Shown: piece after piece, positions 3,001 through 59,879 of the stretch | Layout: every line of letters begins with the position of its first letter | Position numbering within the stretch: the stretch's first letter is position 1 | Origin: Macrostomum lignano | Lineage: Eukaryota | Reading direction: 5' to 3' | Assembly: GCA_002269645.1 (NCBI GenBank) | Contig: NIVC01000087.1 | Coordinates: 372,001 to 436,000 of the forward strand | Length of the DNA: 64,000 nucleotides | Program-made: the position numbers and the translations under genes | The notes under the pieces: generated by a model | The model's database searches: none | Told to the model about the DNA's origin: nothing | What the model saw: only the letters and a program-made list of their open reading frames with translations

Positions 3001-3171
3001 TCACTGTGTGACGTGAGAAGTGTGTGGTCTCATAAAGTGGTTCACAATGGTAAGTCACCACTGTGTGACCTGAGAAGTGTGTGGTCTCATAAAGTGGTTA
3101 ACAATGGTAGGTCGCTACTGTGTGACCTGAGAAGTGTGTGGTCTCATAAAGTGGGTCACAATGGTAGGTCG
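1..3171. repeat. 57-bp minisatellite array (intronic in RhoGEF), with a 1187-bp higher-order repeat
   Basis: Unit TGTGTGACCTGAGAAGTGTGTGGTCTCATAAAGTGGTTCACAATGGTAAGTCGTCAC. ORFs at 534/1721 and 703/1890 recur at an offset of 1187. Confidence 0.97.
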
Positions 3172-3230
3172 CAAGCTAGCAAAGAATTCTAAAGATAGAG
3201 CGCGGTGATTTCTACAGTGGCTATGCTCAC

Positions 3231-9200: not shown

Positions 9201-12200
9201 TTGAATATACAGTTTAATATCGACTTCCAGCCCTTGAATATCCAGTTTAATATCCACTTCCAGCCCTTGAATATCCAGTTTAATATCCACTTCCAGCCCT
9301 TGAATATCCAGTTTAATATCCACTTCCAGCCCTTGAATATACAGTTTAATATCCACTTCCAGCCCTTGAATATCCAGTTTAATATCCACTTCCAGCCCTT
9401 GAATATACAGTCTAATATCCACTTTCACCCATTGAATATCCAGTTTAATATCCACTTCCAGCCCTTGAATATACATTTTAATATCCACTTCCAGCCCTTG
9501 AATATACAGTTTAATATCCAATTTCACCCATTGAAAATCTAGTTTAATATCCAATTTCAGCCATTGAATATCCAGTTTAATATCCACTTCCAGCCCTTGA
9601 ATATCCAGTTTAATATCCACTTCCAGCCCTTGAATATCCAGTTTAATATCCACTTCCAGCCCTTGAATATCCAGTTTAATATCCACTTCCAGCCCTTAAA
9701 TAAACAGTTTAATATCCAATTTCACCCATTGAATATCCAGTTTAATATCCACTTCCAGCCCTTGAATATACAGTTTAATATCCACTTCCAGCCCTTGAAT
9801 ATACAGTTTAATATCCAATTTCACCCATTGAATATCTAGTTTAATATCCAATTTCACCCATTGAATATCCAGTTTAATATCCACTTCCAGCCCTTGAATA
9901 TACAGTTTAATATCCACTTCCAGCCCTTGAATATACAGTTTAATATCCACTTCCAGCCCTTGAATATACAGTTTAATATCCACTTCCAGCCCTTGAATAT
10001 ACAGTTTAATATCCACTTCCAGCCCTTGAATATCCAGTTCAATATCCACTTCCAGCCCTTGAATATACAGTTTAATATCCACTTCCAGCCCTTGAATATA
10101 CAGTTTAATATCCAATTTCACCCATTGAATATCTAGTTTAATATCCAATTTCACCCATTGAATATCCAGTTTAATATCCACTTCCAGCCCTTGAATATAC
10201 AGTTTAATATCCACTTCCAGCCCTTGAATATCCAGTTTAATATCCACTTCCAGCCCTTGAATATCCAGTTCAATATCCACTTCCAGCCCTTGAATATCCA
10301 GTTTAATATCCACTTCCAGCCCTTAAATAAACAGTTTAATATCCAATTTCACCCATTGAATATCCAGTTTAATATCCACTTCCAGCCCTTGAATATCCAG
10401 TTTAATATCCACTTCCAGCCATTGAATATCCAGTTTAATATCCACTTCCAGCCCTTGAATATACAGTTTAATATCCACTTCCAGCCCTTGAATATACAGT
10501 TTAATATCCACTTCCAGCCCTTGAATATACAGTTTAATATCCACTTCCAGCCCTTGAATATACAGTTTAATATCCACTTTCACCCACTGAATATCCAGTT
10601 TAATATCCACTTCCAGCCCTTGAATATCCAGTTTAATATCCACTTCCAGCCCTTGAATATACAGTTTAATATCCACTTCCAGCCCTTGAATATACAGTTT
10701 AATATCGACTTCCAGCCCTTGAATATCCAGTTTAATATCCACTTCCAGCCCTTGAATATCCAGTTTAATATCCACTTCCAGCCCTTGAATATCCAGTTTA
10801 ATATCCACTTCCAGCCCTTGAATATACAGTTTAATATCCACTTCCAGCCCTTGAATATCCAGTTTAATATCCACTTCCAGCCCTTGAATATACAGTCTAA
10901 TATCCACTTTCACCCATTGAATATCCAGTTTAATATCCACTTCCAGCCCTTGAATATACATTTTAATATCCACTTCCAGCCCTTGAATATACAGTTTAAT
11001 ATCCAATTTCACCCATTGAAAATCTAGTTTAATATCCAATTTCAGCCATTGAATATCCAGTTTAATATCCACTTCCAGCCCTTGAATATCCAGTTTAATA
11101 TCCACTTCCAGCCCTTGAATATCCAGTTTAATATCCACTTCCAGCCCTTGAATATCCAGTTTAATATCCACTTCCAGCCCTTAAATAAACAGTTTAATAT
11201 CCAATTTCACCCATTGAATATCCAGTTTAATATCCACTTCCAGCCCTTGAATATACAGTTTAATATCCACTTCCAGCCCTTGAATATACAGTTTAATATC
11301 CAATTTCACCCATTGAATATCTAGTTTAATATCCAATTTCACCCATTGAATATCCAGTTTAATATCCACTTCCAGCCCTTGAATATCCAGTTTAATATCC
11401 ACTTCAAGACCTTGAATATCCAGTTTAATATCCACTTCAAGACCTTGAATATCCAGTTTAATATCCACTTCAAGACCTTGAATATCCAGTTTAATATCCA
11501 CTTCCAGCCCTTGAATATCCAGTTTAATATCCACTTCAAGACCTTGAATGTTTAATTTCCAGTTTAATATCCACTTCCACCCATTGAATATCCAGTTTAA
11601 TATCCACTTCCACCCATTGAATATACAGTTTAATTTCCACTTCCACCCATTGAATATCCAGTTTAATATCCACTTCAAGACCTTGAATATCCAGTTTAAT
11701 ATCCACTTCCAGCCCTTGAATATCCAGTTTAATATCCACTTCCACCCATTGAATATCCAGTTTAATACCCACTTCCACCCATTGAATATCCAGTTTAATA
11801 TCCACTTCCAGCCCTTGAATATCCAGTTTAATATCCACTTCCAGCCCTTGAATATCCAGTTTAATATCCACTTCCAGCCCTTGAATATCCAGTTTAATAT
11901 CCACTTCCAGCCCTTGAATATCCAGTTCAATATCCACTTCCAGCCCTTGAATATACAGTTTAATATTTACTTTCACCCACTGAATATCTAGTTTAATATC
12001 CACTTCAAGACCTTGAATATCCAGTTTAATATCCACTTCCAGCCCTTGAATATACAGTCTAATATCCACTTTCACCCACTGAATATCCAGTTTAATATCC
12101 ACTTCCAGCCCTTGAATATCCAGTTTAATATCCACTTCCAGCCCTTGAATATACAGTCTAATATCCACTTCCAGCCATTGAATATCTAGTTTAATATCCA

Positions 12201-15200
12201 CTTCAAGCCCTTGAATATCCAGTTCAATATCCACTTCCACCCCTTGAATATCCAGTACAATATCCACAATCCACTTCCACCCATTGAATATCCATTTCAA
12301 TATTCACTTCCACCTCATGAATAGCCATTTCAATATCCACTTCCACCTCATGAATAGCCATTTCAATATCCACTTCCACCTCATGAATATCCATTTCAAT
12401 ATCCACTTCCACCTCATGAATAGCCATTTCAATATCCACTTCCACCTCATGAATAGCCATTTCAATATCCACTTCCACCTCATGAATATCCATTTCAATA
12501 TCCACTTCCACCCATTGAATAGCCATTTCAATATCCACTTCCACCTCATGAATATCCATTTCAATATCCACTTCCACCTCATGAATATCCATTTCAATAT
12601 CCACTTCCACCTCATGAATATCCATCTCAATTTCCACTTCTTCCACCCATATATGTATTTCAATACCCACTTCCACCTTGAATATCCATTTCAACAATGC
12701 ATTCAATGCACAGATCATCGCTCAGCAGACCCCCAGACTCACAGCGGATGCTTTAAGCGCGGCCACGGCAGCCGGCGGAAGCAGGGGCAGCTGTGCAGCG
12801 TTAGCAAATTCTAGCGCCAATTCAACCGGACAGAAACCGGCCGGTCTCGGACAGCACCGATCAAGTAGGGTGCGCAGTCGGGCAAATAGCTTCTCAGTCT
12901 CGGTCCAGTCTATAGTAGATTGATGCTGATTGTCGCCGCTACCGCTGCAGAGCTTTACTGATTTCTGCTTTTGTTTGGAAGAGAAGCAAAGAAATTGTTG
13001 TAAAACAAATAACTATAAAATGGCTTAGAAAGGGAACTTCCTTGGGTGTGTAACAAAGTTGCGAGTGCTCGAAGACAGAGGCAGTCAAGTCAGAGATATA
13101 GGTTATTAAAAATGAACATGCCTCCCGTCTCGTGTCGCATATTTATGCTTGTCAGCGGGTGGAGTGAAGCACATGCATACAGGGGACACTACATATGCTA
13201 CGATAAAACTTCAGCTAGAAGGAGAGGGGGTGTTAAGGCTCGGCCTGGACCCATAAGCTGCCAATTCAGTCAGGCCTTTCTAATCTATCTAGATAGTTTA
13301 GAATTAATAGCTGTGTAAAATCATTTGGGTGTACACTTTGGGTGTAAATTGAGAGAGAGGGTTGATAGAGCCTCAGTACATACTGAAGCAAGGCATGTAT
13401 GTATATATACTTTATTATGGCTACACAAAACAAACACGACAACCGTTATATTAATGACTAATTTTGTTTAATTTTTTTATTCTACTATTACTATTAATTT
13501 ATAAATTTATTCACAGTTATTGCTTAGTTAACTGCAAATCTTTTTTCGCAACAGATACTTTTGTCTGTCTATGAAGATACGTGTGACCCCCAGACAACCC
13601 CGCGTTAGTCAACGACGATAAACAGACATTTGCAATTCAGAATACTACTCAGAGCCATAGACAATTGCAATTCAGAATACTACTCAGAGCCATAGACAGT
13701 TGCAATTCAGAATACTACTCAGAGCCATAGACAGTTGCAATTCAGAATACTACTCAAAGCCATAGACAGTTGCAATTCAGAATACTACTCAAAGCCATAG
13801 ACAGTTGCAATTCAGAATACTACTCAAAGCCATAGACAGTTGCAATTCAGAATACTACCCAAAGCCATAGACAATTGCAATTCAGAATACTACTCAAAGC
13901 CATAGACAATTGCAATTCAGAATACTACTCAAAGCCATAGACAGTTGCAATTCAGAATACTACTCAGAGCCATAGACAGTTGCAATTCAGAATACTACTC
14001 AGAGCCATAGACAGTTGCAATTCAGAATACTACTCAAAGCCATAGACAATTGCAATTCAGAATACTACTCAGAGACATAGACAGTTGCAATTCAGAATAC
14101 TACTCAGAGCCATAGACAGTTGCAATTCAGAATACTACTCAAAGCCATAGACAGTTGCAATTCAGAATACTACTCAGAGCCATAGACAATTGCAATTCAG
14201 AATACTACTCAAAGCCATAGACAATTGCAATTCAGAATACTACTCAAAGCCATAGACAGTTGCAATTCAGAATACTACTCAGAGCCATAGACAGTTGCAA
14301 TTCAGAATACTACTCAGAGCCATAGACAGTTGCAATTCAGAATACTACTCAAAGCCATAGACAGTTGCAATTCAGAATACTACTCAAAGCCATAGACAGT
14401 TGCAATTCAGAATACTACTCAGAGCCATAGACAATTGCAATTCAGAATACTACTCAAAGCCATAGACAGTTGCAATTCAGAATACTACTCAAAGCCATAG
14501 ACAGTTGTAATTCAGAATACTACTCAAAGCCATAGACAGTTGCAATTCAGAATACTACTCAAAGCCATAGACAGTTGCAATTCAGAATACTACTCAAAGT
14601 CATAGACAATTGCAATTCAGAATACTACTCAAAGCCATAGACAGTTGCAATTCAGAATACTACTCAAAGCCATAGACAATTGCAATTCAGAATACTACTC
14701 AGAGCCATAGACAGTTGCAATTCAGAATACTACTCAAAGCCATAGACAGTTGCAATTCAGAATACTACTCAAAGCCATAGACAGTTGCAATTCAGAATAC
14801 TACTCAAAGCCATAGACAGTTGCAATTCAGAATACTACTCAAAGCCATAGACAATTGCAATTCAGAATACTACTCAAAGCCATAGACAGTTGCAATTCAG
14901 AATACTACTCAAAGCCATAGACAGTTGCAATTCAGAATACTACTCAAAGCCATAGACAGTTGCAATTCAGAATACTACTCAAAGCCATAGACAATTGCAA
15001 TTCAGAATACTACTCAAAGCCATAGACAGTTGCAATTCAGAATACTACTCAAAGCCATAGACAATTGCAATTCAGAATACTACTCAAAGCCATAGACAAT
15101 TGCAATTCAGAATACTACTCAGAGCCATAGTTGCCATTCAGTCTACTACTCGTACTCAAAGCCATAGACAGTTGCAATTCAGAATACTACTCAAAGCCAT

Positions 15201-18200
15201 AGACAGTTGCCATTCAGTCTACTACTCGTACTCAAAGCCATAGACAATTTGCAATCCAGGCTACTCAGATAACAAAAGCTCACCAGAACATCCTGATAAG
15301 CTTCTATAGCCATTTTTTTCATGATATCCTCGCCGTGTTGTTGTACAGACTTGAATTCTGATGACTCGGCGTCGCAGCTGGAGCTGGGCTGTAATAAGAA
15401 AAAATGAATAGTAGAAAATTTATATAACCGTTCTTGAACATACGGAAAATATCCGCTGGTACAGATTTGTATATGTAACGACGTGTGGGAGAACACAAGA
15501 AATAAATGACTTTTATTACTAACTCTAAAAGGTTTGAATAAAATTTAAATACTACATGTGCATTGAATTGAGCTAGTATTGGTCTCCACAGAAACTGATT
15601 CAATTTAACTAGCTAAATTTATACGCATCACATGCAGATAATTTACTAAGCAATACAAAATAATTACCATAATTAGTATTGATGATGATGAGAGACGGAT
15701 AGCCTCGTACCAGAAACTTTTATCACCCAATGAGAATTTTGACTATCAAAAATACTCTCTCTTTACTATAGTATCCAGTAGGGTAAGCATCTCAATAATA
15801 AATAAGATTAATTCTGTATATTTACAACGACGACAGTACAACACTTACAGGGTGCGGATTTGTATTCGTTAAAAATGGATGGTTGGCTTGAGAATAACAA
15901 AATACAGTACAGGATAAGTTGGAGGTACAGGTAAGACTCCGACCAAGTGCTCGACGCGACTCGACTCCATTTGAGGAATTTGAATTATAATTACAAAGCA
16001 CATAAAGTAGCACTGTACTTTAAAGTACGCTTTATGAGCGATTCGAGAGGTGGCTTACATGCCATTTTAGGTGTTTTATGGGCCATTTTAGAGGTGTTTT
16101 ATGGGCCATTTTAGGGTGTTTTATGGGCCATTTTAGGGTGTTTTATGGGCCATTTTAGGGTGTTTTATGGGCCATTTTAGGGGTGGTTCATGAGCAATTT
16201 TAGGGGTGTTTTATCGGTCATTCTAGGGGTGATTTATGGCCCATTTTAGTGTTTGATGAGCAATTTTAGGGGTATTTATGGGCTTCTCTGAGGCTGGTTT
16301 AAGCGCGATTTTAGAGGGTGTGAGCTCTCACAGACTCTCTATTTTACTTTTACTCCTCTAACAAACAATATACATTTGAACAATTATATTTTTCGAAGAA
16401 AAATCGATACTTAACTAGTCAAAAATTGCAAGCTCGGCCGGACTCAAGGTACAGGGGTATCGCTTATAGAGATTTTAGTATCAAAAAACGGTTTTCTAAC
16501 TTTACGGAGCAGCTACATTTTTAAATCACATGTGACGAAAAAATTATAACTGTATAAATATTAACGCACACAACAAAGCGACAATAACTTTTATTATGTA
16601 CAAATAAAGCACTTACAGTCCAGTGACCAGATATTGTTATTTGGGCACGTTTCTTACGCAGTGCCTTCTGTTGAAGCAGAAACAGAAAACAGAACAAAGT
16701 AGAAGCGAGTGGATTTGGGGCAGGTTATGCGAGCGATATAAAATGGGATTAAAAATCACTGCCAATCAAAGGTTAATTATTAATATGTGAGATTGTCTCT
16801 GTATTAAACGATTTCAAGTGTGGATTAATCAAACTTCAATATTTTAATAATGAATACAGCTACATCATTTTAATATTTAACCCTGAGCCAACATAATTAT
16901 AAACAGCATTCTGGTGCACAAAGGTCCTAAAATGTCACTCTGAGACTCAATGGCACCAAAATGTCACTCTGAGACACAGTGGTCCCAAGGTGTCACTCTG
17001 AGACACAATGGTCCTAAATTGTCACTCCGAGACACAATTGTTCCAAATTGTCACTCCGAGACACAATGATACCAAATTGTCACTCCGAGACACACTGGTT
17101 CCAAAATGTCACTTTGATACACAAATTATCACTCTGATACATAAATTGTCACTCTGGTACACAAAGTGTCACTCTGAGGCACAAAATGTCACTCTGCGAC
17201 ACGAAATGTCACTCTGCGACACGAAATGTCACTCAAAGACACGAAATGTCATTCAAAGACACGAAATGTCACTCAAAGACACGAAATGTCACTCATAGAC
17301 ACGAAATGTCACTCAAAGACACGAAATGTCACTCAAAGACACGAAATGTCACTCAAAGACACGAAATGTCACTCAAAGACACAATGGTGGCAAAGTGTCT
17401 GAGGCTACAAAAAATGCTGAGATTTATAATTCACCAAAAATAAATTTATTACATTCTTATAATCCCAGTGTCTCACACAACACAATGCCAATTCAAAATC
17501 AACCGCAAAATAAAATAGAACGTTACTACAGCAAAAACAACAACACTTACCGTTGTTGACCGCCTCTTAATTTCATTAGTCGACTTGCCTCCACTACCGC
17601 CGCTGCCGCCACCGACAGCAGGCGCGCCAGACTGGCCAGTAGCGACCTGTTCAGCGGCCAGCTTCAACAGACCATCGCTAATTGATCGCGACGGCAGCTT
17701 GGGCGGAGCGGCGCCGGCGACGGCCGCATCGACGACGACCGAGGAGGCATTCGATCGATGCCTGACGGGCACAGCCGGCGGGATGCTGGCCTCGGAGGAG
17801 CAGGGAGAGTCCGGACACTCCGAACAGGGCCGGACAACTAGGCGAACGAATTTCTGGTCTGGACAGGGCCGGTTAGAATTTTAATAGTATTACAGAAATC
17901 TAGCTAGGCGGAAAAACCGAATAAAAGACACATATTCTACTATAAGTAGGACGAATTCAAAAAAAGAAGAAACAAATTAAAAAGAGCTTTAACAGTAGAA
18001 ATACTCGAACTTTCGGGCTAATTTTTTTTGTGCCCTAATAAACTCTACTATAAGTAGCACAGCTTGAACCGAAGCATAATTTATAGTGCAAATTTGACAG
18101 AAAATCGTTTGAATAGAGGCCGGCACTGAAGCTTTATGCTATAGAAAATACCTAAGCGGCTAGTGGAATAATTACAACGCAACAAGCAATAAGCCTGTGT

Positions 18201-28312: not shown

Positions 28313-29282
28313 CGCGCCCTGATCTAACTGTATGCGGCGTTGCGTATTTTGTTGTTGCTGTTGAACACACATGTAATATTACTACGTGCATGTTGATTTA
28401 TGCTTATATTTTTTGCTATAGTACTTTCATAACAAATATACGAGCTTACAAGCATGATTTTTTCCTGCAATATTCTGCATATATATTTTCTAATTCCATG
28501 CAGCTGCTAATAGAATATATGCACATGCAGTCCTGCAATACATACAATGCAATTCAATAGACTGTACAATACATACACTGCATGTTATAATATGACATAG
28601 TTAATAGTGTAATTCTTCGTCCTGTACTGGAAACAAAGCATAAAATGACAGTGGTAATTGTTAAAACACAAGTATGCACTTGTATGTAATACATTTATAC
28701 TTCGTACGTATTTGAATGTAGCTCGTACGTTCCTCGTATGTTCCATGAGGTTGGCTAGGAAAAGGAATAATTAAAAATCCGATTAATATCTGCTGCACGT
28801 ACTTTACCGATGGTTCTGTCTATTTTCGTCTACAGGCACTCTGAGGGGGGTAAGTTAATTGTACAGTTAAGCAGTAGAGAAATGTACAAGAGGGCAGCTG
28901 TGTACACTTTAAGGGATTGTTTGTGCTTGAGAGAATGTAAGGAATGTTCATAAAAATGTAGTTGCGAGTACTCTTGCACACACAGTATTCATGCCTGCCC
29001 GCAGCCCTCTCCCCCCACGTGTGCACTAGCGCCTGCACCGCATATATCACGACAGGAAAAGAAAGAGCTGTAGTGCGCGTCAAGTTTTTGTTTACCCAAA
29101 TCGTAAATGCTAGCGAAATACAGCGGCAAATTGTAGTGCATGAGTTTTTACATGCAGTTCTCTACGCTTTTGTTTTTATCTATCTGACACCCGGACGTTG
29201 TTCTCCTTTACTAAAAAATCATTACGCACAGACCTGTCCAGAATTTGAACTTGAAAAAACGACCACGCCCAATAGCAAAAAC

Positions 29283-32200
29283 ATGCCACGCCCGCACCGT
29301 TTCAAAGAGTCGTCATCGGCGCCACAGTCGACGGACTTGCTGGCCTGCGCTTTCCTGTCCGACAGGCAGCTGGAGGAGCGCATGGTAGAGATGCGACGGT
29401 GCATTGTGAACCTGCGCCAGCGCTGGGACTCAGACAGGCAGCAGCAGGCCGAGCTGCTGCTGCGATGGCTGGAGACCGAGGCAGAGAATCGGCCACAGGC
29501 GGAAGCTCCACCGGAGTCCGAATGGCCACTAGTTTTGAATCGGTGGCGCGACATCCTTGCCGTTGATAGAAACTGGGCCGACCTGCGCGACGACAGCGAA
29601 GAATTCTTGAAGCAGTTGCGGTTGCTGGCGAATGAGCAGCTTCGGCAGCAGTTCTCTGTGCTGCGGGAGTACACTGATAATATTACCTATTCGCTTGTGT
29701 TTCGCAAGGTGCTGCAGGTAAGTTTCATCCCTACCGAATCAATAGTTCCCAGCCAGTGGACAACAAAAATACTCGTACAAGGACGTTGCACTAGAAATCC
29801 AGACTATTATTTTAGTCAGTTTTAATAGCTAAATTCACTAGCAAGCTAAAAAGTAGAAGCCTTTTAGAACTAAAAATGACTATAACCGGTTCAAGAACTT
29901 CTTGGAGCGATTATATGCTTTTTGTCGATCTATCGATTCAGAGGTGGATTCGCAAAGACAATTTCTTATCTGTAGCGTTTTTGCTGTAGCGGCTTTGTTG
30001 TTTTTGGTACTTTTGTTCCTTTGCAAGCCGGCTGTTCATTTTGTCTATGCCCATTCTTTAGTTGTACTTTCATCCTCTAATTTTAATTTAATTTGTCCAT
30101 TGTTCAATCCAACGTACAGGCCCATCTAAGCTATATTATAAGCCTTAAGTGGTCAATCACAAATCTGATATATCAAGGTTTAAGTGGGAAATTGCCGAGA
30201 TGTCAAAGCTCATGGAAGGCAAATAAAAATCTGGGGATAGCCGAGATGCCAATGGTCAATTGGGAGTTGTTGGTAGGCCAAACATCAAAGACAGAGTGAG
30301 AGTTAAGCCATGGCGTAAAGGGAGTCTTTGATGTCAAAGTTCAAGGGGATGCTGATATCTTAGACTAGATAGCTCCAACCTCAAATACTGAAGTATGGTA
30401 TCTCTAATCATCACTCTCTAACCATCAGGCCTTCCGAACAAGGGAAAACTCTGAGGCTGAGCTCATGGTGTACGTCTATCTAATAGAGCTTATAAATATC
30501 GATTTGTTCAATTACACACAATGCGGCTTGGCGCCGTCCTGCGAGAGGAGCTGCGTCTATCGCGGCCTCACAATGTCCAGCGATCACTGGCTGAGCTTTA
30601 AACGCGTGTTCAGCCAGCCAGTCAATGCCCGATTCGTTGCCGTTCCGCTGGCGCTGACTTCGGCCAGCCGCAGCATCGACGTAGCGATGCAGTTCATGCT
30701 GAAGGAGTCCGCTAAGAACTCAACTGATTCAACTGGTGCAGGTAAGCAACGGTTACAGGTCGACTAAAAAAAGAAAAGAAAATTTATCCGTTTAACTAAA
30801 ATTAATGAAGGAGAAAACTGTCCGATAAGAGAGCCGGCATCTTACTCGTAATTACTCGTAATTTGATTGCTCAATTTGCCGCAAGGTCCGCAAAGCGCCG
30901 ACTCGGATGTGCCCTGTCTGCAGGCGATTCACGTGATTGGCGTGCCCGACCGGCTGATGGAGCTGTATCGGCGGCGCTTTCCCCAGAGTGTAGTGAGCAC
31001 CATCTGTGCCGTGGACGTGGCTGGTGTGTCCGCTCACCCGGAGGAGCAGGAGGTCCTGCTCCGCGGTGCCTTCTACCAACTGTTGGGCATGCAGGTAAGT
31101 GAGATGTTTGTGTTACATGTACATTTAAAAGTAAAAACACAGGCCAAATACAAAGGAAAAAACATATTCAAGAAGCGTCAGATTTTAAGCAGACAGTCCA
31201 CGTATCGATGGGTTCCGCCCTGGGTCTGACTTGTAGGCCAAGAACTTGCGGGACGTCTCAAAGAAGATTAGAGAAACGTTCATTTCGGCGAAATTTTTTC
31301 TAATAAACTTTAATTTTTGTTGCAGATCATGCATGCATGCCTTCCTTATACACAATGTAAGCTTATAAAATACTTCAGTTCGGAATCAACAATGCTTTGA
31401 AGCAGCAAGAGCAGAGGGGCTGAAACAGCTCACTCTTTATTTGAGAAAGTTCCAAAGGTGTCACCACGGACATTTGTCGACTGGCTTGTGATTGACGTCG
31501 ACGGCGCATCGAATTTTGAGAGAAGATCTTTTGAGGGAAGAAATCTCTAAGAAGTCAGCCGGTCCATATTGACCAAGTCATCTGGCATTGGGAAAACACC
31601 AAGCCTCACACAGCTGCATAGTCTTAGAATGACATGGAGAAGCGAGGTATACGAAGGCTGCTGCACCAGGCCCCCGTACAGCTCAGCTTTGAACCTTTTT
31701 GACCGCTTCCTGTTTTCCTGGTTGAACAGCGATATTTCCGGGATCACACTGAAGGTGCAAGAGGCGAAATTGCAAAGGGCAAGGGACCTGGAGATTGCGA
31801 AACTTCAACAGGGTGCACCGACTTACCCGTACAGCGTATTACGTCGTTATCCGTCGATATAATGAAAAAAGCACATATTTGTTTGTCATCGCCAGGAAAG
31901 TCAAGCAGACGTCGCAACCGTTGGGTTGCTGTCACGGACTACTTAAGTGTCGTTTAAGTACTTAAGTAGTCAGTGATTTCTGTACGGGTTAGGGATCACA
32001 GTGACGCTTTGATTCAATGCCAAAGAGATTATGTTACGTTATGTTATGTTTTGCTGCAGCAGTTTCATTTGTTGAAGTTTTAATAACTTTGGTACACATT
32101 TAAGAAACATTGTAAAAGCCGAAAGTTACGAGTATCGGAAAGCCTAACAGCGTGACGTAGCTATACATCCTTTTTTCTGTAAAGCCACAGTTTTAAGCTC

Positions 32201-32792
32201 GCATCTGAACTTCATTGATGGAAACAAGATGAGTGTAATTTTCAAACGCTTAGCAATTTGAAACGTCATGCGCTAGGTTTACAGTCTGTTCCACACGCAG
32301 CCCATAGAGCGGCTCACATTTCCTCTATATTAGCTCTACGGGTCCAAGTTTGCTCAGATGCTCAAAAATGTGTATGAAGCATGTTCTGGTGAATTAATTT
32401 AAAAACGATATCGGGGAAATACATGCATGTGTGTGAAGATATATAGGAGCATCATTGCTATTTTTCTCCATCTCACCTCGTTACAGGAGTCGCAGCAGCT
32501 TCGCATCAGTGCAGGTGGAGAATCACCCGGAACTGAACCGCGACAACTGCAGTTGGTGACGGCCAACATCCTGGAAATTCTAATGGTGAATGCTAATCGC
32601 GATCATCTGAGCAACGGTCGCCTAGGAGACCAGGACGCCCCAGCTCGAGCCCTGTTCGCCACCATAGTTAGGATAGCCCGCTACGAGTACTGCCTGCGCA
32701 TCTGCAGAGAGCGCGGACTGGCGACAGACGAGAGTCAGTATGCGGCTGCCCTGAGCCAAGCGGAGTCGGAGCTGCAAAAGCTTCTGGCTTAA
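29283..32792 (+). CDS. Putative mono-ADP-ribosyltransferase of the R-S-E (ARTC/cholera-toxin-like) clade, ~400 aa, 4 exons, apparently non-secreted
   Basis: Exons 29283-29717, 30489-30741, 30886-31094 and 32487-32792 join in frame (phases 0, 1, 0) with GTAAG donors. Motifs in order: EYTDNITYSLVFRKVLQLINIDL (YT..Y..N-like helix), CVYRGL (R at 30561), LTSASRS (S-x-S, ~30660), HPEEQEVLLRG (E-x-E, 31044-31052). The exon-2 acceptor (atagag|CTT) is weak, and an upstream exon cannot be excluded because there is an in-frame acceptor at 29232. Confidence 0.75.
31300..31870 (+). mobile_element. Mariner-like transposase remnant in intron 3 of the ART gene
   Basis: Frameshifted motifs: AHRILREDL; QVIWHWENTKPHTA (HDNARPH-like, 31571-31615); RPPYSSALNLFDRFLFSWL (PPYSPDL..D..LF-like). 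Termini not identified. Confidence 0.6.
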
Positions 32793-34810
32793 ACAACAGA
32801 CTTCTCTGCTCTTGCATGGAGTCAACTGGACTTTTCAAATATCCAGATTCACTTTTGCTATTCCAAAGACACATAACTGCAATAACAATAAATTAAATAA
32901 CTAATAAAAACACACATTTAAGATCAGAGTTCCGTCACAACTTTATTTTTTAGCACACGAAATTTCTTGTGATCGATCGAAGTGTATCGATGGACATTGG
33001 ACGCATTATGTCACCTACTTGGAAATTATTATAGAATTTTATCCAGTGGCGGCGCAGTATCTCTAATGGGGGCGGCGGTTGGGAAGTCACGCAGAATTTT
33101 GACAAGTTACGAGCTACAAGCTCTGACAAGTGACAAGCGAGAGGTGATGCGTGCTTGTTACGAGCGGTTTGTTTCATAGGCATCACTTCATGAGAAGTGA
33201 ATAACACTCGATTCTCGACAAGTTTGAGTAGTTTCGAGAAGTTTGGCAGCAATTCGCGTTGAACTATCAATGAAACTAACAGATTTTCCCAGTACTTTCA
33301 ATTTGCATGTTCTATTTGGCTTACGGACGTTTCCCCTCCGGCATTTCTTCTCCAGAGATTTTCTGAAAATGGAAAAGCCCATTGGCAAGATCACTCTGAC
33401 GGGAACGCTCTGGCAGGAGCACTTTGGCAAGCGCACTTTAGCAGAAGCACTTTAGCAAAAGGACTTAATGGGAGCACTTTGGCGAAAGCACTTAGGTTTG
33501 AGAACTTTGGCAGGGGAAATCTGTTCCACATGTCGTTGTAATAATATTGTCGTTTTAATAGTACTGTCGTTTTAATGATATAATCGTTTTAATATTACTA
33601 TCGCTTTAATATTACTATCGCTTAATACAATAATATACGTAATATCAGTTGGTTTAAAAACACTGTTTTTCCTTCTCTAACGATAAGTATTTAATAATAC
33701 TGATTCTTCTGGTCTCTGATTTTTTGGGTTCCTGTCCTCTTGTTATTTTGTTTCCTCGTTCATTAAGGCGTCCGTCACTCCGTCGTTAGATTTATTGACA
33801 CATTATTGGATATTTAACTTACTTTTTAGCAAGAAAAGCAGATGGACGTGTTCGTCTTGCCCTCAATCAGCCAGCCCCCACAGTTCTTACTCACTAAAGC
33901 CGAGTTTCCAGTCTCTTATTTTCTATTTTATGGGTAAATTTATATCACAGAAGTCACTGCTTGAACTCAGTTGATTTTAAGATTTCAAGAGTTATAGCAG
34001 TTCTATTTTTTTAAGCATTATGACAGTAAAATAAGCTATCGAACCATTCGAGCCAAACAAGTTTGTAAATTTATTATAATTTCGAAGTTCGAAACAGCTA
34101 CAGGCAAATTTGCTGCCAGATAAAACAACACTCGCACACAGAGACAGAAGAGAGGGATTGATCAGGTGAGCAGAATAGAACAAAGCAACTTGACAAAGAA
34201 ACAACTAATTAGCTAGCTGTGCAGTAAAGCAGAAAAACAATATGCTACCAGTTTAAAGTAAACTGGACAAACTTAGCAAACTTGCGAAAGCGTGCAACAT
34301 AAGATTAACAAAGCAAAACAATAATGTTGGGACGCAAAAAGGCTGAATATGGTTTCCGTTTCTAATTAGGCCTCTCATTATTGGGATTAAATAATCAGCA
34401 GAATAAAACCAAATTACCTGTAGATATAGACCAAAGGTGAATATTTAGAATTAATCGAACACAAGGCTATACTTAACTACTTATGTAAGTAGACACGCAG
34501 GTGATAATGTTGCAGTTGACAGACAGACGCGCTGGCAATACGACCATGCAGATGCTGTGTAAAGCACTAGTATGCAAATAATGTACGTTCTTTACTAAAG
34601 TACACGCCAGCTGCCATCGTTATGTGCTGTGTATGTGCGCAGGTTATAAATAAACTTATATTACTCAATGTGATGAGCAGTGCCGAAAAAGATTAGGCCG
34701 CAAAAATTCCAAATAAAACAAAATAAATCTAAAAATTCTTTTACAATCCAACATTTACTGGTATCAAAGTATTCTTTAATTCTAGAGCAAGTCAGCTGAC
34801 ACTTTAAAGT

Positions 34811-35575
34811 GTCAGACTGGAGCCACACTGACACCCTGACAGATGGTCAGACTGGAGCCACACTGACACCCTGACAGATGGTCAGACTGGAGCCACACTG
34901 ACACCCTGACAGATGGTCAGACTGGAGCCACACTGACACCCTGACAGATGGTCAGACTGGAGCCACACTGACACCCTGACAGATGATCAGACTGGAGCCA
35001 CACTGACACCCTGACAGATGGTCAGACTGGAGCCACACTGACACCCTGACAGATGGTCAGACTGGAGCCACACTGACACCCTGACAGATGATCAGACTGG
35101 AGCCACACTGACACCCTGACAGATGGTCAGACTGGAGCCACACTGACACCCTGACAGATGGTCAGACTGGAGCCACACTGACACCCTGACAGATGGTCAG
35201 ACTGGAGTCATACTGACACCCTGACAGATGGTCAGACTGAAGTCATACTGACACCCTGACAGATGGTCAGACTGAAGTCATACTGACACCCTGACTGGGG
35301 GTCAGACTGGAGCCATACTGACAACCTGACTGGGGGTCAGACCAGACTGGAGCCACACTGACACCCTGACTGGTGGTCAGGCGGGAGCCACACTGACACC
35401 CTGACTAGGGGTCAGACAGCAGCCACACTGACACCCTGACTGGTGGTCAGGCGGGAGCCACACTGACACCCTGACTGGGGGTCAGACAGCAGCCACACTG
35501 ACACCCTGACTGGGGGTCAGACAGCAGCCACACTGACACCCTGACTGGGGGTCAGACAGCAGCCAGACTGACACT
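34811..35575. repeat. 35-bp minisatellite, array 1
   Basis: Unit GTCAGACTGGAGCCACACTGACACCCTGACAGATG; variants accumulate at the right end. Confidence 0.95.
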
Positions 35576-36432
35576 CTGTCATCAACATAAGCAAACCGAA
35601 AAATAACAAAGTGTTACCGGGTAAACAGAAGAGAATAGAAGGAACAAAAAAATTCAGTTTCAAATTGGATAAATTTTCAACAGTTTTTGTACAAACGTTA
35701 ACAATAGAACAGCCTATTACGAATAGCAAATAAACATTAGAGAACAAAGAAAAACTACACAATATATGAATAATATATATGTACATATCTATATACAACA
35801 GTAGATAAAGTTGAAATAAATATGGTAAGCCACTGCTACAGAGCCCCCGAATAAATTCTATGCTTGAGACAGTACAAAAATTAAAGCGAATATATACGCT
35901 AAATTAAATCTTATATTTAAAGCAAGTGCAGTAAGAGCTGCCAATATAGAACTGAGTCAAAAAAATCTTTCTATAAGACTGGGCCACAAGCAATTAACAA
36001 TATGATTGGGTGTAAATAAACAATTCCTATTGTAGACTGATATGAGACTCGGGGGGGAGGGGTTTTCCTGCGCATATAAAGTACACATAATTATACTCGT
36101 ACATATACAGGACAAAAAAGGGGCCACCCACTCATATAGTAAACTGTGCCTGCTAATATTTGTTAAGGTAAAGTGACACGGATAAATGGATAGAACAGCG
36201 GTACACGACGCCTCTCAACTGGATGAGTGCTCACTCTACTGTATGGAAGTTGAGAATTGTTTGAGTTCTTAATCTCAGAAAGATATTACCGATCATTTAT
36301 AGCTGGTAGCTAAGGCAAATAAATATTAAAAAAATATTTGATCATTCTTGTGCTACGCGGAAGACATCTGGTGTTAATTTCATTTGAGCCACTGTTTAAA
36401 CCAGGAATTCTAATTTATCATGCACCGATACC

Positions 36433-37310
36433 CCACACTGACACCCTGACAGATGGTCAGACTGGAGCCACACCGACACCCTGACAGATGATCAGACTGG
36501 AGCCACACTGACACCCTGACAGATGGTCAGACTGGAGCCACACTGACACCCTGACAGATGGTCAGACTGGAGACATACTGACACCCTGACAGATGATCAG
36601 ACTGGAGCCACACTGACACCCTGACAGATGGTCAGACTGGAACCATACTGACACCCTGACAGATGATCAGACTGGAGCCACACTGACACTCTGACAGATG
36701 ATCAGACTGGAGCCACACTGACACCCTGACAGATGATCAGACTGGAGCCACACTGACACCCTGACAGATGGTCAGACTGGAGCCACACTGACACCCTGAC
36801 AGATGATCAGACTGGAGCCACACTGACACCCTGACAGATGGTCAGACTGGAGCCACACTGACACCCTGACAGATGGTCAGACTGGAGCCATACTGACACC
36901 CTGACAGATGGTCAAACTGGAGCCACACTGACACCCTGACAGATGGTCAGACTGGAGCCACACTGACACCCCAGATGGTCAGACTGGAGCCATACTGACA
37001 CCCTGACAGATGGTCAGACTGGAGCCACACTGACACCCTGACAGATGGTCAGACTGGAGCCATACTGACACCCTGACAGATGGTCAGACTGGAGCCATAC
37101 TGACACCCTGACAGATGGTCAGACTGGAGCCACACTGACACCCTGACAGATGGTCAGACTGGAGCCATACTGACACCCTGACAGATGGTCAGACTGGAGC
37201 CACACTGACACCCCAGATGGTCAGACCGGAGCCACACTGACACCCTGACAGATGGTCAGACTGGAGCCATACTGACACCCCAGATGGTCAGACCGGAGCC
37301 ATACTGACAC
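36433..37310. repeat. 35-bp minisatellite, array 2 (same unit and orientation as array 1)
   Basis: Same unit as 34811-35575, separated from it by ~850 bp of unique AT-rich DNA. Confidence 0.95.
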
Positions 37311-37514: not shown

Positions 37515-39306
37515 CTAGTTCTTTTCCTTCGCCGAAGACTTGTCGTCGGCGTCGGCAGCGGGCTCGGCAGCTGAGCCAGTCGCAGGCTGCTGCTGCTGCT
37601 CGGCAGGATAATAAGCAGCCATGCGGACGTGCCAGGCAACGGAGGTGACGGCGCTGACAGTGCGGAATTGGTGCACAACGCCGCGCGGTATGTAATAGAT
37701 ATCGTTGTCGCGAAGGTGCTGCCGGCTATAGCGGAATCCTTCGCGTCTTAGTAAATTCAATTCGGCGTCGTCTAGCCAGAGCTGGGGCGAGCACTGAGTC
37801 ATTGGCGGCTCAAGTATGTCCAGCTGGAGCCGGATGATCAAGTCGGTGTAGTGGCGCGGATCGAACAGGATGGCGTCTTTGCACACCCGGCCGGGCTCGC
37901 CCAGGCCTGGCCGGCGGTTCTCCTCGGCGTGGACGCACTGCAGCATGCCGACGGCAGCGGTGGTGTGCCGGTCAAGACCGTCGTCGGCGTGATCGGCATG
38001 GGCGTGGGTCCGATCGGTGATCACCACCTGGCGTCGGCCGCGGGACCCGGTGCTGTACATCTGGGATAGGCTGTCTCTGCCGCTGCCGGAGCCGCGCTCT
38101 GAACCGCTGCACAGGGCCTGCAATGGAGGTGGATAATGTGAAAGCTGAACGTCTGGGAGTGTGGCTGCTCAGCCTGAGGATCTGGGAGGCTGGCTGCTCA
38201 GCCTGAGGATCTGGGAGGCTGGCTGCTCAGCCTGAGGATCTGGGAGGGTGGCGGACAAACTTAAGCGAATAGAAATGAATGACATTTGGCTGAGAAAAGA
38301 ATCACGCGATTAAGCATCAAAGATAATAAATCAATCTAACCTGCTCGCCGGGCCTTGTCCACAAGATCGGGCCGTCATTGGAGCTGCTAGGCTTGCTGCC
38401 AGCCAGATGGGACATTGGGCCCCAGGGCATGACGGGCGCCAGAAAGGGATTTGACTCAAGAGTAGCCAGCATGTCGTTCATTAGGCAGCCAGTCTCTTCA
38501 CCTTTCGCACCAACCATGCTAACGGATTCCATCGAGCCGCTGCGAAATGTGCCGTGCGCGTAGTTGGCCCGAATTCGTTCCAAATAATCTGCGGCGGTTA
38601 ACGATTCCACTTCGTTCTTTTTCTCTAGGTGACGCGATTTCACAGCGAGATTTGGCCGCTTCCGGCACAGTTCGGATAGCAGATCCGGCAGGTCGTGAGC
38701 GGCGCCGTGAACCACTCCGACGCAATAGTTGCTGTGCATGCGGCCGGGCTTGCCGCGCTCTTTAACTAGTAGATTTCTTAGAAATAGGGTGGCAAATTTG
38801 GCCAGCTGAGCCCGGTCTAATCTGGCCAATTCGCCGGCGTAGGCGTGCAAAGCCAGCCCGCCGCCATTGGAATGCTTCTCAATGTACATTAGATCGATTA
38901 GTTTGCGGCGCGGCTGAGCAGTGAGCTGCATCATGTGCTGGTCGGGGCTGTGCCCATTCTTGGTTGCGTCATCTGCAGCGGCGGATGGAATGGCTGATGG
39001 CGGAGCGGTTGCTGGGGCCGGCTGAGACTCCTCGGAGTCTGGATGATGTCGATTATGCTTCTTTTTCTTCTTTGCCAAAGATTCTTCTGGTTGCCGATTT
39101 GCATCTGGTTCTCGTTTCAGCTGCTTGCCGCTGGGGCTGGTTTCGGCCTGTGGCTTTGCTGGCGACTCTTGCTCCAGCTGCTGCTTAGAGTCTGGCTCCA
39201 GCTTCATCTCTGATGGGGCCGGCTGCTCTATGGCGATGTGCTTTTGGCCACTGTCACAGTTGCCATTTGTGTTTGCGTCTGCTGGCTGATTTTCTGTTGC
39301 TGCCAT
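37515..39306 (-). CDS. RSBN1: RSBN1/RSBN1L-family (KDM9-type, JmjC-like) lysine demethylase, 2 exons, ~522 aa
   Basis: Exons 39306-38341 and 38117-37515 (phase 0; CAG|GTTAGA ... ttgcag|GCC). Family motifs: NDGPILWTRPGEQ, DRTHAHADH, RHTTAAVGML, LQLDILEPPMTQC, WLDDAELNLLRREGFRYSR..L.DNDIYYIPRGVVHQFRTVSAVTSVAWHVR. Confidence 0.92.
38154..38249. repeat. 29-bp x3 tandem repeat inside the RSBN1 intron
   Basis: GGCTGCTCAGCCTGAGGATCTGGGAGGCT at 38163, 38192 and 38221. Confidence 0.9.
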
Positions 39307-50519: not shown

Positions 50520-53132
50520 AATTCAAAAACTGCTGGCAGGTCTGTAACTGAGAGATGATCCCCAGGCTGCCTTGCAGGTGGAAAAAGCAAGCTCTAAAGG
50601 TTCAGTCAACCTGCCACAATTTATTTGTTGCATAAAAGTGGATGATCCATTGATTGCTGCATCTGTTGGAACAGACAATAGCAGCTCATTGCATGGATGT
50701 ACCACTTTTTTGAGCAGTGATGGCTCTAACAAACCTGCCTGCGACATAGTAGACAACATTAGTGCATCTGTATCTTCAATTGGTTCACCCAGGGTCAGCT
50801 GACTGGCAATCTCTTCAGCCTCCATCGCCTGACCACGACTCTCAACGCTTGCATTGGCAGACAGGGCTTGGATGGCCAGTGGCCGGACACTGTTGAACTG
50901 CAATAACAATACTGATTGGATAGCTTTCTCAGCATCCAGAACGTCCTTGCAAGACACATAGTAGTTTAATCCTTTGCGGTGCCAATACCACCCAAATTGT
51001 CCTTCTAGTGGATCCGATTGCAGGGCTCCAAGGAGGACATACTGAAACATCAGATTGGAAAGCAGGTACCAAGACACCTCAACCATGGCTTTGCAAAGCA
51101 GAGAGTGTGGCTTAGGGCCAGAAATGTTTTGTCACTCAGGCCTCGGCTCTTGCTTTCTTTCCACTTCCAAGTATAGTCTAGGACGTCAGACAAATATTCT
51201 AGCTTCCAATTGGTGTCCGACATAATGGGATCTCTGCTGCAATTCCTCTTGAGCTTGCCGATTGTCATTGTTTTTACATTTAACACTTGCTAGAGCTGCG
51301 TGACCACCATAACAAAAGTTGCAGTGTTGTTCCACTGCTGGCCCTGGTGTCTGGTATAGTACAGCAATGCACTAGCAGTAGACTCCAAAAATATGGCTAG
51401 TGAAATTTTGGTTTGGTCTTCTGGATACTCTTTGGATCCATGACGCTTGAGTTAAGCTTTGGTGCTAGCTTTAGTGGCTTCTTTTCCAATTCAAACAGCT
51501 CTCGGATACTCCCAAATTTAGCTACAATGAAAGTCGCCATGGTCCCTTAGATTCAGTTGGTTGACAAAGAACTGGCTCTCCAGGATGGGAAGGTCAAGAA
51601 TTTTCCTTTTTTGAAAGTTGTTATAGATGTTTTTAATTGTGTGAGTTGGATCGAATAGCAAAAATATCTTCTTATCCACATTGTAAGGATGAGTAATCCA
51701 CATTTGGAGAATGCCGCCACAAAGCTTGTGGATGAAAAAAGCTCGATTAGCCAAATGGTTGTTGACTAAGATAGTGACAATGTTGAGATTGGTGCGCTGA
51801 AGCATTTCCATGATGCTCTGGTAATGCGCATGCAGAATGTCTGTTGTCAGCTTGCTTAGAGGAAAGAGCATGACAATGTCACGGAACTTGCCAGCAATCG
51901 ACTTCACCATGAAGCAGAGCATACGGCGCTGTTTTACTCTCCTGCATGCCGGCGATATTTCTAGCAGAATATTCAATTCTTCTGTTAAGATGAATTTCGT
52001 CGAAAATTCAATTTATGTTGGATTCCATGATCGGGAGATCTTGAGCTCTAAGATGAAAGTACTTTTTGTCGAAAACACTAGCAGTAACTGAAAGCGGATT
52101 GGCAATTGCTGTTAGTCACTGCACCGATAGTAGAATCAGCACCTCTTGCTCCAACAACTGATAGCATGCCATTCTTGTGGACTTGGGAATCAAAGCGAAG
52201 ACAATCAAATCAGGAGAGTACCGCAATGAAGGCTTCTTGATGTAAGACAGCTTCAGTTGTTTGATAATAAATTGAATCCATTGATGAAGCAGCTTAGAGG
52301 TGTCCTAACACACTTCTGTCCATCTGGTTAGACAATCAATTGTGTCCTCAATTAATTTATTGTCTTCATCTCAATTGGTTGTATTCGAAGTCGTCTAAGC
52401 TTTAATTTGGGCAAGCAGATTTTGAATTTGCAAAAATAGCCGAACTTGACCATTGTCCAAAAATTGAGCCAATCTCTTCTGCTGCACCGACAGTCCTTTG
52501 ATGCTTGCAGAAACGGTCAAGTCATCGCAAATTTGCAGAGAGCAGAGTATCTCAGGGACATCTTAACTGTCTACACAAACAAGAAGAAATGTAATGCTGG
52601 CTGTTTTTGCCACAACAACAAAGTCGGCAGGTATCAGGTTGCACTCAAGCTGCACTTTGATGTCGGCAAGCAAGGCAATTTCATCCTGACTGAGGAACTC
52701 CGCTGCTGCATTTTCTATTCGGTCTTGCTTGATCTGTTGCCTCCGCTCTGACATTGTTCTCTCCGTTCAACATTGGGTAGCCGGTGGCTGTAGTTGTTCA
52801 GGAAGTTGAGAAAATACAGTTGGAACAGCGTCACTCTTTAGTTGACGTTTAACTAGCACTTCACTATCTCTCTTGCGCTTGTGATGAGGATTGGTGTCCT
52901 GAGACGTGACGATGAAGTCATTGTCCTTGAAGTGCAAGGAGCACAATCTTGACTGTTTCGTAGGGCTGTAATTTTTTTCTCTGCGAATACGTCGCAGCCA
53001 TTCTAAAAGAAGCAGTGGATTGTATAAAGGAAATTTGCAAAATGAAATTTTGCTGTCCATTTCAGGATTCTCTGTGAAGTTTTTTCGCATGTAGCCAGAA
53101 TGGCAATTGATTGCAGCACATTTGTAGCCCAT
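50520..53132 (-). mobile_element. Degenerate P-element-superfamily (THAP/THAP9-like) DNA transposon
   Basis: The N-terminal THAP C2CH finger is MGYKCAAINC...KFP...EWLRRI...SRLCSLHF...LKSDAVPTVF (ATG at 53132). It is followed by IFDEIHL, FMVKSIAGKFRDIV, FLLFDPTHTIKNIYNNF, GLSDKTFLALSHT and YVLLGALQSDPLEGQFGWY, with stops and frameshifts. Termini not found. Confidence 0.88.
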
Positions 53133-59478: not shown

Positions 59479-59879
59479 TACTAGTATAAACTGTTTTTTA
59501 TAAGAAAAAATGCATAGATTGCACATAATATTATATAGATAATGTATATAAATAATCTTCCAAAATTTATTCCAATGTATACTATGCTACCTTCTTAGCT
59601 ATACCAGTAGTTTAATATCCGAAATGAATAAATAACCAGAGGCTATTTGGTTAAATGGCTATTTGGCATAATTTTAAAAATACTTACCGGTACCGGTAGT
59701 ATAATAATATCCAGGTTTAAACATCTATAACAAAGAAAGAACAACCTTTTATTTTGTACGTTTTTTATATTTATTTAGCATACTTAAAGAACTCTCAGTA
59801 CAAAATACTTCTATTTGTCATCCTGGGTTTAAATTTAGTGATTCTGATGATGCTTAAAAAAGCCTGTTTTGTACACCAA

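Follow-up and report, generated by a model that had tools for sequence, protein, structure and literature searches.

In animals, intracellular ADP-ribosylation is attributed to PARP-type (H-Y-E) enzymes and to sirtuins. To our knowledge, the known animal mono-ADP-ribosyltransferases of the R-S-E class are extracellular proteins of the ARTC type. Pierisins target guanine in DNA and carry ricin-B-type lectin domains. Animal R-S-E ADP-ribosyltransferases (ARTs) of bacterial origin, represented by pierisin in Lepidoptera and by ARTs of molluscs, provide a precedent for the transfer of such genes (PMC3482391). One further gene of this class is found in the flatworm Macrostomum lignano, at positions 29283-32792 (+) of a 64,000-nucleotide stretch of contig NIVC01000087.1 (positions 372,001 to 436,000 of the forward strand), hereafter called the window. 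Judged from its predicted structure and by analogy with studied enzymes, this gene probably encodes a functional cytoplasmic mono-ART of 420 amino acids that belongs to the R-S-E (cholera-toxin/C3-like) clade and is likely directed at arginine.

Searches with the protein sequence returned no significant match in Pfam (no PF01129 at E-values up to 10) and no match in the PDB with phmmer, and a 45-sequence family profile found no solved structure there with hmmsearch; the assignment of a fold therefore needed structure prediction. The full-length AlphaFold model, based on the family alignment, reached a pLDDT of 87 and a pTM of 0.88, and all its Foldseek matches in the PDB with E < 0.1 were R-S-E ARTs (HopU1, Vis and SidE). 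When the domain was modelled on its own (residues 118-364, pLDDT 86), the top 12 PDB matches were again all R-S-E ARTs (Vis, HopU1, Certhrax, VsdC and SidE/SdeC), after which E rose to about 0.8. The best of these was the Vis toxin (4XZK; E 2.6e-6, TM 0.50/0.57). Most of the top 20 matches in a viral structure library were annotated ARTs (Alt-like, VIP2-like and giant-virus ARTs); the remainder were uncharacterised or structural proteins, none of them annotated as another enzyme fold, and beyond them E exceeded 1. The helical parts outside the catalytic core gave no significant structural match in Foldseek.

Weak sequence signals point in the same direction. PF01129, the Pfam ART family, gave weak matches in 28 of the 45 relatives, always at profile positions 170-205, which we take to be the E-x-E segment. 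Profile alignment with hhalign against T4 ModA placed the family S-x-S on SAS and its E-x-E on EQE, with an E of 0.055 and a probability of about 1%, and no meaningful alignment with T4 ModB was obtained. PF03496 (ADPrib_exo_Tox, threshold 23.4 bits) was not detected in the window protein and appeared below threshold in 2 of the 45 relatives (best E 0.029).

The catalytic residues occupy the positions expected of an ART and are strongly conserved among 135 near-full-length representatives with mutual identity of no more than 50%, the set to which the residue percentages given here refer. VYR190G falls within predicted strand 185-195, the first core strand (beta1), and its arginine is kept in 134 of the 135. 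S223-A-S225 closes strand 214-225 (beta2; S223 95%, S/T225 97%), and E303-Q-E305-VLLRG opens a long hairpin strand at 305-327 (ARTT loop/beta5; E303 97%, E305 99%). Upstream of these, the helix with Y130-T131...Y136...F147-R148 resembles what we take to be the 'Y-x-x-Y..IN..LR' NAD-site helix of C3-like enzymes. Structure, weak sequence signal, and the position and conservation of the triad are independent lines of evidence, and together they show, at the level of model and sequence, a predicted ART fold with the R / S-x-S / E-x-E triad. An earlier annotation made from the letters of the window (the sequence-only reading) had proposed this fold and triad, and both are borne out by the AlphaFold/Foldseek matches and the 95-99% conservation of the residues. 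It had also suggested profile and structure searches as a check; the former gave no significant Pfam or PDB match, and the latter recovered R-S-E ARTs.

The gene consists of four exons on the plus strand, separated by GT-AG introns and joined with the frame intact. The corrected coding sequence (29283-29717, 30429-30741, 30886-31094 and 32487-32792) translates without internal stops into 420 amino acids, a product 100% identical to GenBank PAA91427.1 (BOX15_Mlig013588g1, M. lignano 'hypothetical protein, partial'). Exon 1 (29283-29717; amino acids 1-145; donor CAG/gtaagt) encodes a disordered tail with the invariant R6-F7, an N-terminal helical domain with R33, M34, R38, R45 and W48, and the Y130-T131...Y136 helix. 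It is followed by intron 1 (29718-30428; 711 nt, phase 0, GC 38.5%) and by exon 2 (30429-30741; amino acids 146-249), which contributes F147/R148, E165 in an ELINIDLFNY helix, the VYR190G strand beta1, R213, P218, and S223-A-S225 at the end of strand beta2. Beyond intron 2 (30742-30885; 144 nt, phase 1), exon 3 (30886-31094; amino acids 250-319) carries SVVSTICAV and the ARTT-type E303-Q-E305-VLLRG, with E303 encoded at 31044-31046 and E305 at 31050-31052; the latter codon, singled out in the sequence-only reading for an E-to-A exchange, does encode the second Glu of E-x-E. Intron 3 (31095-32486; 1392 nt, phase 0) precedes exon 4 (32487-32792; amino acids 320-420 plus TAA), in which the last beta-strand, the invariant N356-R-D-H359 (32595-32606), R373 and a C-terminal helical hairpin are found. 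Two AATAAA polyadenylation signals (32887-32908, +) lie 95 and 111 nt past the stop codon.

This model retains much of the gene structure proposed from the letters, namely the four in-frame exons with GT-AG introns, the junctions 30741/30886 and 31094/32487, and the order of the motifs (Y130-T131...Y136 in exon 1, VYR190G and T-S223-A-S225 in exon 2, E-E303-Q-E305-VLL in exon 3). It departs from it at the junction then drawn as 29717/30489 and in the length of the protein, which is 420 rather than about 400 amino acids. The acceptor at 30429 (ctctctaaccatcag/GCC) is stronger than that at 30489, and the 60 nt at 30429-30488 encode 20 residues, AFRTRENSEAELMVYVYLIE, that can be aligned in every homolog. 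These residues include F147, R148 and E165, conserved at 75%, 94-95% and 99%, respectively, with F147 invariant in the 45-sequence family alignment. Exon 2 is taken to begin at 30429 because this segment matches the homologs, carries conserved residues, and is included through that acceptor in the RNA-seq-based GenBank proteins PAA91427.1 and PAA71870.1. A 400-amino-acid model with the acceptor at 30489 was rejected, since it drops 20 residues including the family-invariant E165. The site at 30489 is an in-frame AG 60 nt 3' of the acceptor; a minor isoform lacking amino acids 146-165, and with them F147, R148 and E165, is conceivable through its use and would probably be inactive.

Upstream of the coding sequence lies a transcribed leader (5' UTR; 28995-29282, +) that is open in the coding frame and has no ATG. 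The frame remains open for 107 codons, and no in-frame ATG occurs between the TAG just before 28962 and position 29283. PAA91427.1 begins with LPAALSPH..., about 96 codons upstream of M1, and bears its 'partial' flag because the frame stays open there. RNA-seq and transcript assemblies, with open reading frames called by TransDecoder, underlie the M. lignano annotation (PMC5730564). The gene is therefore transcribed, and its junctions have indirect experimental support.

The protein belongs to a rare family that extends across bacteria, fungi and animals. Seeding by k-mers among 5.8 billion clusters yielded 48 full-length homologs (E 1e-45 to 1e-15), those with E of 1e-45 to 1e-25 covering 94-100% of the query. 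When 1.84 billion representatives were searched exhaustively with an HMM, 262 reached E <= 1e-3 and 143 reached E <= 1e-30; the similarity is thus well above chance level, and the family is rare. Named members include Hydra vulgaris LOC101237262, proteins of Agaricomycetes (Termitomyces, Lyophyllum, Tricholoma, Obba and others) and one from a Rubrobacter metagenome-assembled genome; the family is typified by the Hydra protein, M. lignano Mlig013588 and Coprinopsis CC1G_03129-like proteins. Among 185,579 prokaryotic species scanned, 17 carry the gene, including Streptomyces, Actinomadura, Actinokineospora, Rubrobacter, Solirubrobacterales, two cyanobacteria, Treponema, Desulfovibrionaceae and Acidobacteriaceae, with one cyanobacterial copy on a Pseudanabaena plasmid. 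Further homologs lie on Mb-scale, gene-sparse ENA contigs that are probably eukaryotic. A complete Hydra open reading frame with short flanks was found on a transcript-sized Logan contig (L025, SRR26316181, 1287 bp), which suggests that the Hydra homolog is expressed.

Similarity runs from end to end, which makes the N-terminal helical domain and the C-terminal extension hallmarks of the family. The charged helical N-terminal domain and the distinctive C-terminus noticed in the sequence-only reading thus prove to be conserved features, the latter comprising the NRDH motif, directly after the last strand, and the helical hairpin. Beyond the triad, the invariant positions are R6, R33/M34/R38/R45/W48, E165, R213, P218, N356-R-D-H359 and R373, all of them present in the window protein; conservation reaches 97-98% for NRDH, 99% for E165, 98-99% for R213 and 99% for R6. 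Pfam, the protein names at NCBI and the literature open to searching yielded no description of the family, whose database entries are called only 'hypothetical', nor did the identifiers CC1G_03129, Mlig013588 and DUF6236 lead to any paper. A paper on a 'novel eukaryotic ART-like family' concerns LRRC9 and is unrelated. The name 'Ubiquitinyl hydrolase 1' attached to the same M. lignano protein in UniRef100_A0A1I8H2J2 looks spurious, as Pfam detects no deubiquitinase domain; it coincides curiously with the structural likeness to the SidE mART domain.

In bacteria, the ART gene is often accompanied by a receiver (REC) domain. Such a gene adjoins it in 8 of the 17 bacterial loci and on one metagenomic contig (L002), often at a distance of 10-20 bp or overlapping. 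Its product of about 200 amino acids has an N-terminal transmembrane helix, a PF00072 match (E down to 2e-9) and the signature LWVDDxPxNN...ISDxxR. Across bacteria and the fungus Tricholomella (below), partner genes lie at 986-1684 in L002, 7090-7686 in L005, 7132-7833 in L007, 5303-5914 in L014, 3104-3844 in L019, 2889-3503 (-) in L010, about 5519-5848 in L011, about 842-1180 in L018 and 5522-6886 (-) in L026. In the fungal Obba protein P0012, and also in P0076, P0123, P0142, P0156 and P0181, the REC domain is fused N-terminally to the ART; in Tricholomella, a separate gene immediately adjacent to that of the ART encodes it. No REC-like sequence was detected in the 64-kb flatworm window (tblastn, E threshold 1e-3) or beside the Hydra gene, and the linkage is therefore an accessory rather than a defining feature. 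No literature on a two-gene ART-REC module was found.

Other partners occur as well. In Streptomyces (L003, L006, L009 and L013), the downstream partner is instead a DUF6236 protein of about 410 amino acids with a C-terminal hydrophobic region, and in Treponema and Desulfovibrionaceae it is a 181-amino-acid membrane protein (L016 5162-5707, L017 78-623), which in P0047 is fused N-terminally. The ART is the fixed element in these bacterial pairs, and its partner is exchanged. The bacterial neighbours examined include no known immunity gene and nothing that encodes an ADP-ribosylhydrolase or a macrodomain. PADLOC models gave no match for bacterial family members or for their REC and DUF6236 partners, and the sole match was a weak '2TM effector' for the Treponema partner. 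The bacterial neighbourhoods hold integrases, transposases and genes of restriction-modification or toxin-antitoxin type, and the bacterial members themselves are stand-alone proteins of 370-390 amino acids free of secretion or translocation domains. From these features the bacterial relatives look like cytoplasmic parts of small, mobile, regulated modules, not like secreted exotoxins. The idea of a bacterial-toxin origin, put forward in the sequence-only reading, is thus supported by the existence of bacterial members and by the introns of the flatworm gene, and is weakened in that the relatives are not classical secreted toxins.

The flatworm gene probably descends from a horizontally acquired gene of bacterial type that later came to have three introns and host composition. 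The homologs of Hydra, of Tricholomella and on three probably eukaryotic ENA contigs are single uninterrupted open reading frames, whereas the flatworm gene has three introns. The M. lignano protein is at most 33% identical to any other sequence retrieved. In a crude neighbour-joining tree without support values, it forms an isolated long branch, the fungi stand beside actinobacteria, and Hydra-type sequences stand beside those of cyanobacteria and Rubrobacter; no donor can therefore be named. Compared with all homologs, the flatworm protein has two specific loop insertions of low pLDDT (about amino acids 240-255 and 320-338), which fall at the junctions of introns 2 and 3 (window 30720-30741/30886-30915 and 32487-32545). 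This coincidence suggests that sequence was added at the origin of the introns or by a shift of splice sites. The patchy pattern, as seen in the sequences, fits several independent horizontal transfers, and the state of the flatworm gene is consistent with a transfer long enough ago for it to have gained introns and become fully ameliorated in composition. Of the earlier picture of an anciently domesticated toxin, the gain of introns stands, and great antiquity is not borne out in view of the patchy spread, the intronless homologs and the isolated branch.

The predicted cytoplasmic location was weighed against the possibility that the gene encodes an ordinary secreted or GPI-anchored ecto-ART of the ARTC type whose signal-peptide exon was missed. 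The open upstream frame includes a hydrophobic stretch, FLHAVLYAFVFIYL, and the relatives match PF01129 weakly, as an ecto-ART would lead one to expect; the upstream stretch is nevertheless free of ATG codons and diverges between the two genomic copies of the gene as non-coding sequence does (2.4%, 17 gap columns, an intron-like pattern), and the window protein itself falls below the PF01129 threshold. No signal peptide, transmembrane or GPI-type segment was seen by hydropathy or by comparison with homologs: the highest 19-residue Kyte-Doolittle mean is 1.27, all peaks correspond to core beta-strands, and the last 30 residues, with a mean hydropathy of -0.30, form no hydrophobic tail. Homologs from Hydra, fungi, bacteria and metagenomes share polar N-termini with an invariant R-[FY] near the start. 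In the flatworm protein this R-F motif lies 5 residues past the ATG, as in bacterial homologs, and marks the true N-terminus as it does in the 370-400-amino-acid bacterial, Hydra and fungal proteins, none of which has a hydrophobic leader, so that no upstream exon is required. The protein is predicted to be cytoplasmic because both ends lack hydrophobic segments and the homologs have polar termini, in agreement with the sequence-only reading, and a missed ecto-ART is most improbable. Bacterial contamination or an assembly artefact has next to no chance of being correct, although bacterial homologs are known and the family is patchy among eukaryotes. The three spliceosomal GT-AG introns have a low GC content (36-42%), as in the host (window background 41.6%); the exons, with 58% GC and 69% GC3, match the other coding sequence of the window (55-64%, GC3 59-77%); the gene sits among M. 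lignano satellites and metazoan genes; and no bacterial homolog exceeds about 35% identity. A second, approximately 97% identical locus is present on another scaffold (L027, NIVC01001130.1, PAA71870.1), with no further copy found inside the window. Comparison of these two copies bears equally on another possibility, that horizontal transfer left the flatworm a mere relic, decaying or without catalysis (a pseudogene or pseudoenzyme), which plays no enzymatic part there today. The isolated branch (<=33% identity to any other protein), the lineage-specific loops at two intron positions and the departure of the NAD-site helix from the YTS..GY consensus would suit a relic. Yet every catalytic and family-invariant residue is kept, the gene is transcribed according to its RNA-seq-built annotation, and the open reading frame and all donor and acceptor sites are intact in both copies. 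Their exons differ at 4 of 1263 sites without indels, with only two residue differences (E57K and L112F), and their introns at 49 of 2230 aligned sites with 32 gap columns (Fisher p = 2e-6 against exons), an approximately 7-fold lower divergence of exons that shows the M. lignano gene to be under purifying selection. The introns, host GC, metazoan neighbours, second copy and conserved exons are the grounds on which both contamination and a pseudogene are rejected, a relic being very unlikely.

For the reaction itself, ART enzymology suggests a mechanism in which R190 and S223 would hold and position NAD+, E305 would stabilise the oxocarbenium-like transition state and promote cleavage of the nicotinamide-ribose bond, and E303, two residues upstream, would direct transfer to the guanidinium of arginine. 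Given E303-x-E305, the enzyme would most likely mono-ADP-ribosylate arginine on an intracellular protein. The modules specific to the family, namely the N-terminal helical domain, E165, R213, NRDH and the C-terminal hairpin, would enclose the catalytic core and, most likely, provide a surface for binding a target or regulator; more speculatively, the invariant R6-F7 in the disordered tail could be a pseudosubstrate or a site of auto-modification. Several points weigh against an arginine-directed transferase. The window protein has no significant sequence match of its own in Pfam or the PDB; TM scores to known ARTs are just about 0.5, with rmsd of 5.5-8 A; R190, S223 and E305 are equated with residues of solved ARTs by their order and by secondary structure in the model rather than by direct superposition; the flatworm NAD-site helix reads YTD..TY where the family has YTS..GY; and no close relatives were found in other flatworms in the databases searched. 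Arginine specificity is assigned from E-x-E by analogy only, and enzymes of the R-S-E class also have residues other than arginine, nucleic acids or small molecules as acceptors, or function chiefly as NADases. An unchanged fold and active site could accordingly serve a different reaction, either as an NADase or in ADP-ribosylation of a nucleic acid or small molecule. R-S-E ARTs include DNA-modifying enzymes of the pierisin type (PMC3482391). The invariant R6, R33, R38 and R45 could bind a phosphate-rich ligand, and variable membrane partners together with neighbourhoods rich in mobile elements resemble defence systems, in which NAD+ depletion is common. This alternative is unlikely: PADLOC recognised neither the ART nor its REC partner, E-x-E rather than Q-x-E is present in 97-99% of members, and the nearest structures (Vis, HopU1, Certhrax and SidE) are, as we understand them, arginine-directed transferases, a direction shown directly, for Vis only, by the title of its agmatine complex.

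An arginine-directed cytoplasmic transferase is therefore retained as the preferred reading, and its roles in immunity, conflict or signalling, as raised in the sequence-only reading, are conjecture. The adjacency and fusion of REC in bacteria and fungi suggests a regulated two-part module, with the flatworm gene standing alone. A broader reading, tentative and rather doubtful as a whole, would make the family the enzymatic half of a module of membrane-anchored REC protein and cytoplasmic arginine-ART that has moved repeatedly into eukaryotes and been domesticated in animals. On this account, the module would serve signalling or defence in bacteria, agaric fungi would have kept the REC partner, and the enzymes of Hydra and the flatworm would act without it; the R-F tail would be a pseudosubstrate or auto-modification switch, and NRDH a family-specific catalytic or target-binding element. 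If this were true, invertebrates would gain an intracellular pathway of arginine ADP-ribosylation distinct from PARPs and ecto-ARTs. Even apart from the module, an active protein would mean that an arginine-ADP-ribosylating enzyme of bacterial-effector type acts on the cytoplasm of the animal itself, in both flatworm and Hydra. Strict conservation across bacteria, fungi and animals, together with the recurrent REC link, makes the family a tractable candidate for a regulatory or defence module, and M. lignano is amenable to transgenesis and RNAi, so the question can be addressed directly.

The remainder of the window contains other genes and many repeats. The nearest downstream neighbour, at 37515-39306 on the opposite strand (-), consists of two long open reading frames with a weak JmjC-type C-terminal signature (PF08007, E 0.009). 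Fragmentary open reading frames of a P-element/THAP9-like transposase are located at 50523-51976 (-; TNP-like RNase H N-terminal domain, E 5e-5). Exons of NDST, a heparan-sulfate N-deacetylase/N-sulfotransferase, span 59754-62259 (+; Pfam HSNSD_N, E 5e-22) and are broken by a 33-bp satellite array that chances to stay open in frame. Tandem-repeat arrays with units of 57, 30, 33, 35, 31 and 44 bp occupy about one quarter of the window (4-3172, 4355-6208, 7995-12694, 13624-15227, 34811-35578, 36433-37310, 60555-61569, 62258-62970 and 63506-63956) and produce long spurious open reading frames on both strands; the 35-bp arrays at 34811-35578 and 36433-37310 have a common unit.

Among known enzymes, the closest in structure are the bacterial effectors and toxins Vis of Vibrio splendidus (4XZJ/4XZK), HopU1 of Pseudomonas syringae (3U0J), Certhrax (4FK7) and VsdC (3NTS), matched with E from 2.6e-6 to 2e-3 and TM of about 0.45-0.57. 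The flatworm protein shares with them R on beta1, S-x-S on beta2 and E-x-E before beta5, as well as an N-terminal helical sub-domain with a Y..Y helix. It differs in that HMMER detects no similarity, in the lack of a secretion or translocation module in its family, in the addition of an N-terminal helical domain of about 120 amino acids, the invariant NRDH and the C-terminal helical hairpin, and, for the animal gene, in the presence of introns. The mART domain of Legionella SidE (5ZQ2/5ZQ5, 7MIS) has the R-S-ExE fold in common (Foldseek probability 0.98-1.0, TMq 0.46-0.50) and is likewise followed by a helical C-terminal region. Its match is weaker in E (about 1e-2), the likeness is limited to the mART region plus helices, and the flatworm protein has neither Pfam-detectable PDE or DUB domains nor any sign of a ubiquitin target.

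The vertebrate ecto-ARTs (ARTC, PF01129) follow the same R-S-ExE logic and share the predicted arginine specificity. The window protein differs from them in lacking a PF01129 match, a signal peptide and a GPI signal, in its predicted cytoplasmic location and in its flanking domains; all eight family members checked singly scored 12-20 bits, at the E-x-E segment, below the threshold of 22.3. The ARTC-type signature claimed in the sequence-only reading accordingly holds for R-S-ExE, but the protein is not a member of the PF01129 family, and its nearest structures are bacterial (Vis, HopU1, Certhrax and SidE). Alt-like and Mod-like phage ARTs, of the T4 ModA/ModB/Alt type, are among the top matches in the viral library, although their sizes and accessory regions differ from those of the flatworm family. 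The family has no sequence relationship to pierisin and the mollusc ARTs; it carries E-x-E together with different accessory domains, and its members in bacteria are not toxins of the secreted kind. Enzymes of this type are well known, and pierisin is a precedent for the horizontal gain of toxin-type ARTs by animals; to these the M. lignano gene adds an unnamed, deeply conserved family of predicted cytoplasmic ARTs with distinctive accessory modules and a REC partnership.

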